From assembly GCF_032062105.1 (NCBI RefSeq), contig NW_026924013.1, positions 124,001 to 188,000 of the forward strand: a stretch of DNA of 64,000 bases, given 5' to 3'. The stretch is from Saccostrea cucullata (lineage: Eukaryota). The notes beneath the pieces were generated by a model. That model was not told the origin of the DNA. It saw only the letters and a program-made list of their open reading frames with translations, and ran no database searches. Positions within the stretch are counted from its first letter, which is position 1. Each line of letters opens with the position of its first letter. The position numbers and the translations under genes were made by a program. Positions 18,975-21,900 of this stretch are shown here, piece by piece.

Positions 18975-21900
18975 TCATGCAAAAATGCAGTACAAGAATA
19001 CAAACACACACAAAAGAATAACAGCATTCAGATTAAGGAAGAAGTCAAATTTAGAACTGATGTATAGTTTATTTCTCAGCAGGTTTTGAACTTTGTCCAT
19101 GTTGTCTCTCCTCCTTTGAGCCTCAATTTCTCTTTTCTCCATCTCCTTGCGTTTAATTTCCTGAATCTTTTGTAACTCCTGAATCCTTTGTTGTTCCCGA
19201 ATCCTTTGTAACTCTTCCATTCTTTCCCTTTCCTTCTGGAGCTCTATTTCTTTCAGCCGTTTTCGTTCATTCTGTCTCTCTATTTCCCGTTGGCGTTCCA
19301 CTTCACGCTGTCTCTCCATTTCTGCTTGTCTTTTAAGCTCCTCGATCTTTTCTAACTCTTGAGCTTTCTCCACCTCACTCTTTCTTTTTAAGAATTCTGA
19401 ATGGATCTCCAGTGACATATCACTAGCATAGGAACTTTCTAAAGACAAAGATAATGAATGGTTTATAAATTGTTACAATGACCCTTTTCAGACTATACGT
19501 CCCAAGAAATTTCAATTTTTAACGCATTACCCTTGAATGGCATTCCCATAAGTAATAAGCAAATACAAATGAATTATGGAAATGAAGAAATCATCAAGGA
19601 CATACACATTATTTTATAAGTAATATTAAATCAAAATTTCAAACCTTTATGCCTTTTTAAAATTATGATTAAATTGTATAATCCATTGCTTCGTATAAAT
19701 AATTTTTTTTTGTTCGCTAAAAAAAAGAACTACTTACTTTTTACTCTGATCCTTTTATTTCTTAACTCCACCGTTCTCTCTCCGAGTTCCCTCGTCTCTT
19801 CCTTCCCTGTATCGGTCGTTTCGGGAGCGTTTTCCACTCTGTACTCTGTAACCGTTTCTTCAGTTTGACTCTGTCTGACCACTTTGTCAAACACGGCGTC
19901 ACGATTAGATTTCGTCCTCCTCAGAGCAGGACGTTCCCTTTCAACACTAGTAAAAATGGTCTCCTGAACCTGGACTTGGTTGAGCTCCTCTTTGAATTTA
20001 TCTTCATCCTGAGATATGTTCACCTGTTCTTCAACACTCTCGTCGCTTTGGTAAGCCTCATTTACAATGTCTTTCATTGAATAAGTTACATATTTGTCGT
20101 CACTTTCTTGGACTGATATTTCTTCATCATTCAAGACGGTTTCAGGAATAAATGCGTTTTCCTTCGGTGGAGGTCTTACGTGCTCAACTGTCCAATACGT
20201 CAATCCTTTTATCTAAGGGTAAGAAGATCAAATATGTATTTTTAATGGTTTTTCATTCACATTGAGTAAAAACATTTGCCGTTTTAATGGAGGAGCAATT
20301 TTATATGTGTTGGTATTTGACAAGATCACTTACCGAGTTGTTTTTCTTTGGCTTTTCTAAAAGACTAACAACAATTACAACCAAAGCAGTAAGAATCAAA
20401 ATCAGGGCGGCAAAGTACGTGAAGTGGACTTTGGCAACAACTGCTGGACGGTTATCTGGTTCGCCACAGCCGGGTGAGGGATACACGAAATCTAGAACCA
20501 TCCTTATTAGTCCACTTATCTGACCCACCAACATACCCCAGAAGGCACCCTTTAAAAGAATGGATAGAAAATGGAAATGCTGGTACATTTGAAGATTCCA
20601 GTACAAATGGAAAATCCTGATAGAAAGGAGCGGTTATTTGTATCATACCTTTTCGGTCACCCTGGGTACAAATATTGCTAGTAGAAATACAGAACAAATA
20701 GGTGGAGCTATATAACCTGTGAGAGCCTGTATGTAGAGAAACAGTTGTCCCTGTTGGGCAGCCTGAATCAAAGGAATCCACAGAATGCTTATTCCCACCA
20801 AAATAAGCACAAATATCCTGCAAAAAAGGATTCAAGTTATTGAAGGATCTATGGAGTTGATACATAATTTCAAAACTATGATATTAAACTTACTTTCCGA
20901 CAATAAGCTGTTCTCTTTCAGTCGCTCCTTTTCGAAGACGTCTCCATATGTCCATGGTAAATACGGTGGCGGCGCTGTTGAACACTGACGTCAGAGAGCT
21001 CATCAGAGCAGCCATCATAACTGCCATCATCAAGCCGCGCAGTCCTGTGAAAAACATTGAATGCGATTGCATTGAAGCGAAGGAAGCTCTCGGGACATTA
21101 TTTACACGTGCATTGGTCTGGGTAACTAACTAACAAAGTTTCATTTACAAGACAAATTACGATACTGCACAGGTCTAATCAATAATACAAATTTAACCAC
21201 ACTTTGCAATAGTTATGTCTCTTTTCGGGGTCAACCAAAAAGGAGAAATTACATTTCTCCTCTTTATGCTAATAAACATTTGGGCGTGCTCCGATAAATC
21301 CAATGTGTTCATTTTTTTTTTCTTTTGATATATGGGTAGCCCCATCTTTGGGCAATTATTATACAAGATACACAGCATTTCTCCAGTCAGATGACAAAGT
21401 TACAAACCAGAAAACTATAAAGGCTACTGAAAGGAATCTATGGGTTTTTCCCCAAAGATAGTGACCAAGAGACATAACTTTTGAAAAGTGTGGATTTAAA
21501 TACTAGTATATGTAAACAGTATACGTGAAGTAGGCTAGAACATGGTCATAAATTGTTTAACCTATTGGAGCTAATCCTAAAATGAGCTGAGGGTACGCAA
21601 TATTTGAACAGCCAGTGGGGTTTTCACAAACTTTCATACAGGTTTCCCGATCAGCACATCCTACAGTGTCTGTAAAGAAAAAAACATTTCATAAAGCATA
21701 TCGATAAACCAAACTCTGTCATGCATTACAGCAATGACGATTAAAGTGCTTAAATTTTAAATGATTATGTACCTGGAAATAATACTCTGCTAATCATTCC
21801 GGGCATAATTATAAGAAACAGTGGTAAGAATTTTAGATATCCAGCCATAATGGTTGCTCCACGTGCATGTCCAATGTTTTTTGCCGCCAACACACGTTGT

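Follow-up and report, generated by a model that had tools for sequence, protein, structure and literature searches.

Sugar symporters of the SGLT type carry one large cytoplasmic loop, intracellular loop 6 (IL6), which in humans is poorly understood. In human SGLT2 this loop is intracellular and flexible and is unseen in the cryo-electron microscopy (cryo-EM) structures, and one group has reported that a GFP fusion into human IL6 is accepted (PMC10803289). The gene described here, paralog A, lies on the reverse strand of a 64,000-nucleotide stretch of Saccostrea cucullata DNA (contig NW_026924013.1, positions 124,001 to 188,000), referred to as the window and numbered from its own first letter. 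A comparison of paralog A with human SGLT1 and SGLT2 (SLC5A1 and SLC5A2; PDB codes: 7SL8, 7WMV, and 7VSI) reveals the same order of transmembrane helix (TM) 13, IL6, and TM14, and the same residues at the Na2 and sugar sites. However, its IL6 has about 300 residues instead of the approximately 90 of human SGLT1, around three times the usual size, and it contains a charged helix and clade-specific invariant motifs; no sequence similarity between this loop and human IL6 was detected. On balance, and with a confidence only a little above even, we favor that paralog A encodes an intact SGLT1-like symporter with a lineage-enlarged and retained IL6, in which a disordered stretch and a short module precede a charged helix that would likely behave as a single alpha-helix (SAH) strut.

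The features of paralog A needed for this comparison are given below, with lengths in nucleotides (nt) and residues.

18975..26007, reverse strand: paralog A, SGLT1-like gene of about 15 coding exons, with an ATG near 26007 and the stop at 18977-18975.
20334..20549, reverse strand: third-last exon, encoding TM12-TM13 (classical numbering) and ending just past TM13, as aligned to human SGLT1 residues 482-550.
19738..20212, reverse strand: penultimate exon, 475 nt in an open frame, with the KGLTYWT anchor followed by an acidic, predicted-disordered segment bearing conserved short motifs.
19868..19936, reverse strand: invariant ERPxLRRTKS and a following 12-residue stretch, a basophilic-kinase-type motif (alignment columns R94-S115).
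19739..19774, reverse strand: invariant 11-residue basic block at the 3' end of the penultimate exon (alignment columns V148-K158).
19439..19737, reverse strand: phase 1 intron, GTAAGT...TTTAG, with splice sites read from the sequence and the same phase and junction codon in orthologs.
18975..19438, reverse strand: last exon, 464 nt including the stop, an open 153-residue frame with a 25-residue module, the charged helix, a hinge, and TM14.
19362..19436, reverse strand: 25-residue module starting SSYASDMS, nearly invariant in the ortholog alignment, at the N-terminal end of the helix.
19107..19376, reverse strand: charged helix of about 90 residues, rich in E, R, K, and Q, with a hexad repeat, delimited by composition, periodicity, and AlphaFold2 (AF2) prediction.
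18978..19106, reverse strand: likely hinge, KLYI anchor, and TM14, delimited by a fall in the predicted local distance difference test (pLDDT) score and by invariance in orthologs.

Single exons of paralog A match the Pfam SSF profile (PF00474) at 55.8, 45.8, 39.6, and 31.6 bits (cut-off 22.8 bits), and together the exons cover positions 1-397 of the 406 in the profile. Moreover, they align to the human SGLT1 and SGLT2 chains with E values of 1e-15 to 1e-19. For example, one exon aligns to residues 222-299 of human SGLT1 (E = 3.5e-17) and the third-last exon to residues 482-550 (E = 3.6e-16), with further exons aligned to residues 375-427 and 426-482. The SS pair of the Na2 site, the YIQ glutamine, the YW pair of TM7, and the N, H, and E of the N-terminal sugar site are all kept in paralog A, as are the motifs MSSLTS, YIQ, WYWC.DQ, and NIGSEHF..FEW; in human SGLT1 numbering, we take these residues to be S392/S393, Q457, Y290/W291, N78, H83, and E102. 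The terminal hydrophobic helix (TM14) that follows the loop is kept in paralog A, in the neighboring paralogs B and C, and in the orthologs, and a PDB search with this helix alone, which is too short for the purpose, gave no match. All the exon frames of paralog A are open, and its exon open reading frames (ORFs) match those of paralogs B and C in a self-comparison of the open segments of the window. With its 15 open coding exons and an ATG start near 26007, paralog A looks like an intact transporter gene; human SGLT1 has the same count, 15 coding exons. The assignment of paralog A to the SGLT branch of the SLC5/sodium:solute symporter family is supported by these alignments, and an intact SGLT1-like Na+/sugar symporter, with transport as a predicted function, is the best explanation for them.

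The human cryo-EM papers number the helices TM0-TM13, so that what they call the TM12-TM13 loop lies between TM13 and TM14 in classical numbering. In paralog A, the third-last exon stops just past TM13 and the last exon closes with a TM, so the region between them corresponds to IL6. Paralogs B and C have the exon structure, the intron phases, the KGLTxWT and KLY..N(L/I)NA anchors, and the final TM of paralog A; however, their loops have about 80-100 residues and no charged helix. An earlier interpretation of this stretch, made without database searches and called here the sequence-only reading, had described an SGLT-type symporter with an enlarged cytoplasmic loop. The symporter assignment agrees with the SSF and human SGLT1/SGLT2 alignments, and the cytoplasmic placement matches the intracellular IL6 of human SGLT2 (PMC10803289). 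The exon sizes that it gave, 475 + 464 nt (312 residues) in paralog A against 97 + 245 nt in B and 100 + 200 nt in C, are exact, including coordinates and phases, and the anchors that it named (KGLTxWT, KLY(I/M), and N(L/I)NA), along with the final hydrophobic helix, are common to the three genes.

The two loop exons have the properties of coding sequence. The third-last exon ends at 20334 with the donor TCG/GTAAGT, and the acceptor CCCTTAG lies ahead of 20212; the penultimate exon is followed after 19738 by the phase 1 donor A/GTAAGT, and the acceptor ...GTCTTTAG lies ahead of the start of the last exon at 19438. In a local script, both exons join in frame into 312 residues plus the stop, a TGA at 18977-18975; this joined model was used for the frame check only, and searches and folds were run exon by exon. 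An open frame of 153 codons is estimated to occur by chance with a probability of about 1e-5 at this base composition, and the frame of the last exon is open also in three independent ortholog sequences. Each loop exon has a single copy in the 1.17-Gb assembly.

Orthologs were obtained as ORF fragments on Logan and JGI contigs by a word search with the penultimate exon, which is 54-64% identical in those fragments. Outside the window species, the A-type loci fall into about five lineages (L004-L007; L008; L001-L003; L010/L011; and L009), and each of these loci has, just ahead of the penultimate exon, an exon that belongs to the A type rather than to the B/C type. The last exon was also reached in three sequence types from two deep lineages (L001/L002, L009, and L010/L011), being 63-69% identical in L001, L009, and L010. 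These last exons follow a CAG acceptor, agree with paralog A in phase and in the lysine codon at the junction, are open to the stop, and encode the charged helix; no stop, Pro, or Gly is present in the helix of any lineage. Also, the DNA similarity to distant orthologs is confined to the predicted exons, with limits that coincide with the exon borders and the stop codon. For example, the similarity to L009 stops at 19732, adjoining the donor of the penultimate exon, and no DNA similarity to L001, L009, or L010 was found within the 19439..19737 intron.

Between the window and the ortholog lineages, the proportion of synonymous differences (pS) is 0.6-1.0, that is, saturated, and that of nonsynonymous differences (pN) is 0.19-0.30. 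The ratio of nonsynonymous to synonymous substitution rates (dN/dS) is 0.06-0.24 for the penultimate exon where dS is estimable, and the closest pair gives 0.18 when the last exon is considered and 0.26 when only the helix segment is, for which no other pair is unsaturated. Purifying selection on the loop exons is supported by these values, and the comparative footprint gives strong indirect support to the predicted two-exon loop as a real coding sequence. The sequence-only reading was open to refutation by orthologs that lack or break the charged region; because the orthologs keep this region open and under purifying selection in the dN/dS analysis, it is not refuted on this point. Two further sequences resembled parts of the loop. 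An ORF on a contig from ERR10960549 (P0014, locus L017) looked like a distant homolog and was ruled out as a new lineage; it is a database artifact that derives from the L010-type exon by bisulfite-like conversion of C to T, with T to I and R to C changes. In the same genome as paralog A, another open frame, L016 (G000:C6107:10563-13715), weakly matches the charged helix (E about 1e-3, 45% over 53 residues) and is probably an unrelated E/R/K-rich protein.

The loop would have three parts: an acidic stretch, the 25-residue module, and the charged helix. An AF2 prediction of the penultimate exon with ten aligned sequences has a mean pLDDT of 56.8 and almost no secondary structure, and on this basis the acidic stretch, about 150 residues long, is probably disordered. 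The ortholog alignment nevertheless shows invariant blocks in this stretch, the KGLTxWT..RPPPK anchor and YVTY..NEAYHSDE, in addition to the motif and the basic block listed above. The RRTKS site, with R at positions -3 and -4, may be a basophilic-kinase-type site; it is unchanged in all orthologs except L008 (RRTMS). Neither loop exon matched a Pfam family.

On the other hand, AF2 models the last exon as one helix from residue 2 to residue 152, with a mean pLDDT of 90 that rises to 95-96 in the charged part, and the whole 153-residue exon of paralog A is devoid of Pro and Gly. The SSYASDMS module at its beginning is identical in 24 of 25 columns across five rows, the sole change being V to M in L002. 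The charged helix has 55-58% charged residues, a net charge of -1 to +2, and 21-27% hydrophobic (aliphatic) residues; its unit is a hexad of the form hydrophobic-E-R-x-x-E, and at 0.15 nm per residue its 90 residues would extend about 13.5 nm, or roughly 13 nm. At residues 111-130 of the exon the pLDDT falls to 76-82, and the orthologs have Pro there; this segment is likely a hinge ahead of TM14. Finally, a 14-residue stretch and TM14 are invariant in the orthologs and common to B and C. Searches of the PDB with the charged helix gave only insignificant matches, such as ING5 and mS26, and the features of the ESM Atlas yielded nothing of use.

The closest described counterparts of this helix are the ER/K SAHs of myosin VI and X, INCENP, CAF-1 KER, and caldesmon, which are likewise long, E/R/K-rich, Pro/Gly-free, and near neutral, with charged residues at heptad positions and a charge period of 6 (PMC4571873, PMC5812594). 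For example, the INCENP 'coil', earlier predicted as a coiled coil, is a monomeric SAH, and its hexad-type charged helix resembles that of paralog A (PMC4571873). However, the predicted helix of paralog A has its opposite charges at i+3 and not at i+4, and it contains more Q and more hydrophobics. Moreover, the ER/K SAHs join two soluble domains, whereas this helix lies inside the loop of a membrane protein and has both ends tied to the membrane.

Heptad coiled coils share with it a long, amphipathic-looking helix, and generic predictors would probably call the helix of paralog A a coiled coil; nonetheless, both the hydrophobic period of 3.5 and the filled a/d seam that characterize them are missing. 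In a Fourier analysis, acidic and basic residues have a period of 6.0 and hydrophobics peak at 3.0 or 6.0, and in no lineage does the hydrophobic power at period 3.5 exceed the random expectation. In the best heptad register of any 28-residue window of the helix, positions a and d are filled to at most 0.5, short of the mostly apolar a/d positions of a coiled coil. Waggawagga penalizes four hydrophobic seam spacings (PMC5812594); counted with these same four spacings, seam networks amount to 0.01-0.05 per residue, the level of shuffled sequences, and are only of the i,i+3,i+6 type. Because the 3.5 period is at the null level, a/d positions are at most half filled, and seams do not exceed the shuffle, a classical coiled coil is unlikely for the charged helix. 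As in an SAH, it is a long, uninterrupted, Pro/Gly-free helix, rich in E, R, and K, near neutral, and with no hydrophobic seam. Opposite charges at i,i+3 are strongly enriched (37 against 5 like pairs, z 5.6).

Several observations weigh against an SAH strut of defined length. Pairs of opposite charge at i,i+4 are the classic stabilizers of SAHs, and in this helix they are unenriched (12 against 14 like pairs, z -0.5 to -1.4). Charge pairs overall run to 0.5 per residue (z 3.5) and alternating-charge networks to 0.45 per residue (z about 4), the latter an SAH-like feature, but these densities amount to no more than about 30% and about 17% of those in an ideal E4K4 helix. Hydrophobics, at the proportion given above, are more frequent than in textbook ER/K helices and form a few i,i+3,i+6 runs. 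AF2 cannot distinguish an SAH from a single strand of a coiled coil. Also, helix length and sequence differ among lineages (70-95 residues), and therefore the exact length may not matter. Since i+3 pairs are enriched but not i+4 pairs, and the pair density is about 30% of E4K4, a monomeric SAH is plausible but not proven; the charged helix would be a borderline case, close to the lower limit for acceptance by SAH predictors.

These results qualify the sequence-only reading unevenly. Its observation is confirmed: the acidic, probably disordered segment with a basophilic kinase-type site is borne out by the AF2 disorder and the presence of RRTKS; the Pro/Gly-free charged run, placed at 19105-19400, is close to the measured extent, about 19107-19376; and the AlphaFold check that it proposed returned a confident helix, with the pLDDT of 95-96 over the charged part. 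Its interpretation is partly supported. For the charged ER/K single helix of about 95 residues, a helix of about 90 residues is indeed predicted by AF2 and has no heptads, but the enrichment of i,i+4 pairs is absent. The cytoskeletal tether or transceptor scaffold that it put forward would be conjectural.

The available data suggest the following arrangement. In one lineage, the roughly 90 residues of IL6 would have been extended to about 300, and this enlargement would have been retained. After TM13, about 150 acidic, disordered residues with short motifs would lead to the 25-residue module, then to the charged helix of about 90 residues, the hinge, and TM14. The helix would most likely stand alone as an SAH and not be paired as a coiled coil. 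Because both loop ends are fixed in the membrane, it cannot link two free domains; because its C-terminal end is hinged to TM14, it would project from the inner face of the membrane. Then, it could extend about 13 nm inward and keep the motifs away from the core of the transporter. Its far end would bear the basic and phospho-site motifs together with the near-invariant module, and the disordered stretch of about 150 residues would lead back to TM13. Such a structure might offer a site for regulated docking, held at a given distance from the transporter, or anchor the transporter to a cortical structure, with its partners binding at the strut or along it, and docking-site presentation or cortical anchoring would be the most likely role of the loop in this model. 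A more specific version is a tentative proposal to which we assign a low probability: an SAH strut would hold a phospho-regulated docking module at a fixed distance of about 13 nm below the membrane and thereby tie the transporter either to a signaling complex or to the cytoskeleton of the cortex or of microvilli.

Other explanations have been considered for the charged helix. It could oligomerize the transporters, pairing with a like helix or a charged partner as a noncanonical coiled coil and giving dimers or clusters. The hydrophobic content of the helix would be enough for a seam if well placed, these residues recur every 3 or 6 positions with some i,i+3,i+6 runs, and the long helix modeled by AF2 is equally compatible with pairing. 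Nonetheless, the absence of a 3.5 period, the a/d positions at most half filled, and the seams at shuffle level count against it, and a period of 3 or 6 would wind the hydrophobics around the helix and not along one face, so that we consider oligomerization unlikely. To a similar degree we doubt that the helix is a tolerated low-complexity filler without specific function, grown by slippage of an 18-nt unit, with only the flanking motifs being relevant. This would fit a tandem repeat found in the helix of the window species:

19159..19214, reverse strand: tandem repeat of 18 nt, 3.1 copies, one hexad unit duplicated inside the helix-coding part (TRF).

It would also fit the ortholog indels of 4-13 residues, a helix that in the window species is about 8-16 residues longer than in the orthologs, and the low positional identity of its middle part, as well as the flexibility of human IL6 and its acceptance of a GFP fusion (PMC10803289). 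However, although synonymous sites are saturated, the lineages retain the composition, the hexad charge period, a length of 70-95 residues, and a helix free of Pro, Gly, and stops, and the only informative pair has a dN/dS of 0.26. Moreover, no 18-nt repeat was found in L001 or L009, where L009 has only a weak 15-nt x 2 row, and the six-residue protein pattern is nevertheless kept in these orthologs. Because the hexad persists where the 18-nt repeat is absent, the pattern appears to be held by selection and not by recent slippage alone. From these comparisons, the helix probably grows and shrinks by hexad units, and its composition and pattern are probably maintained by selection.

A third possibility is that the helix serves mainly to bind partners, for example microtubules, actin, or calmodulin, through an IQ-like pattern near its end, and is not a passive spacer. 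This pattern, [IV]QE[IL]xRxExE[KR], at 19125-19166 on the reverse strand, occurs in each of the four ortholog sequences although the end of the helix is variable elsewhere, and the SAH of INCENP binds microtubules directly (PMC4571873). Nevertheless, Pfam IQ gave no match, and the pattern, expected by our estimate about 0.2 times per helix by chance at this composition, may be a chance match; we hold a primary binding role to be quite improbable. Least likely among the alternatives, and in our judgment very remote, is an error in the gene model, in which the two long exons would be absent or rare in the mature mRNA. In line with such an error, the searches brought up no annotated full-length protein that has the loop. 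In contrast, purifying selection acts on the open frames of these exons, their phase and splice sites are conserved, the similarity ends at exon borders, and TM14, which the transporter needs, shares its exon with the helix.

Paralog A has other SGLT genes as neighbors. Four related SGLT copies were recognized by the self-comparison of open segments of the window, the other three being as follows.

About 30455-39268, forward strand: paralog B, with last two exons at 38777-38873 (97 nt) and 39024-39268 (245 nt), phase 1.
About 42331-47474, reverse strand: paralog C, with last two exons at 42788-42689 (100 nt) and 42530-42331 (200 nt), phase 1.
48946-51720, reverse strand: fourth, partial SGLT copy, with early exons and the TM12-13 exon (48946-49203).

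In the TM12-13 exon of the fourth copy SPGCG is changed to SPGFG, and no KGLT or terminal exons for it were found within 48300-48946; from its sequence, this copy is probably a truncated pseudogene. The SGLT copies across 18975-51720 are mixed in orientation, A and B being head to head over approximately 26-30.4 kb. A tandem array at 35163-36857, made of about 11 copies of a 156-bp unit whose translations are 80-100% alike, lies within an intron of paralog B, between the exons at about 35038-35217 and 36948-37160. Elsewhere in the window, two adjacent short open segments at 10885-11219 on the forward strand are similar to each other (54% over 44 residues).

Beyond the orthologs described above, relatives of the loop are scarce. 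An exhaustive, profile-free HMMER search with the penultimate exon against 1.84 billion representatives returned only three genomic ORF fragments, although a full-length relative could have escaped it in a cluster represented by a loop-less sequence, and a profile search gave nothing further. The word searches yielded nothing but ORF fragments that run through introns, with no transcript among their sources, and a metagenome scan with the last-exon alignment gave no match. Because the exhaustive and profile searches yielded few fragments, all genomic, the A-type loop appears confined to a narrow clade. In the literature, no SGLT or SLC5 protein with an SAH or a charged-helix loop was found, searches for bivalve SGLTs and for SAHs in transporters gave nothing relevant, and the text of the Waggawagga proteome survey mentions neither membranes nor transporters. 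What is new in paralog A would then be the combination of a standard SGLT core with a clade-specific, conserved module in IL6, formed by an intrinsically disordered region plus a charged helix.

The practical value of this finding is modest for now. Nonetheless, a natural variant of IL6, built out into an ordered, conserved module in which motifs are combined with a rigid-looking charged helix, offers a handle on the regulation, anchoring, and clustering functions of this loop. Moreover, if the helix is an SAH, these domains, so far described for motors, chromatin, and RNA proteins, would extend to the loop of a membrane transporter, and if it acts as a strut, paralog A would represent a solute carrier with a built-in molecular ruler or tether, possibly a sensor-scaffold.

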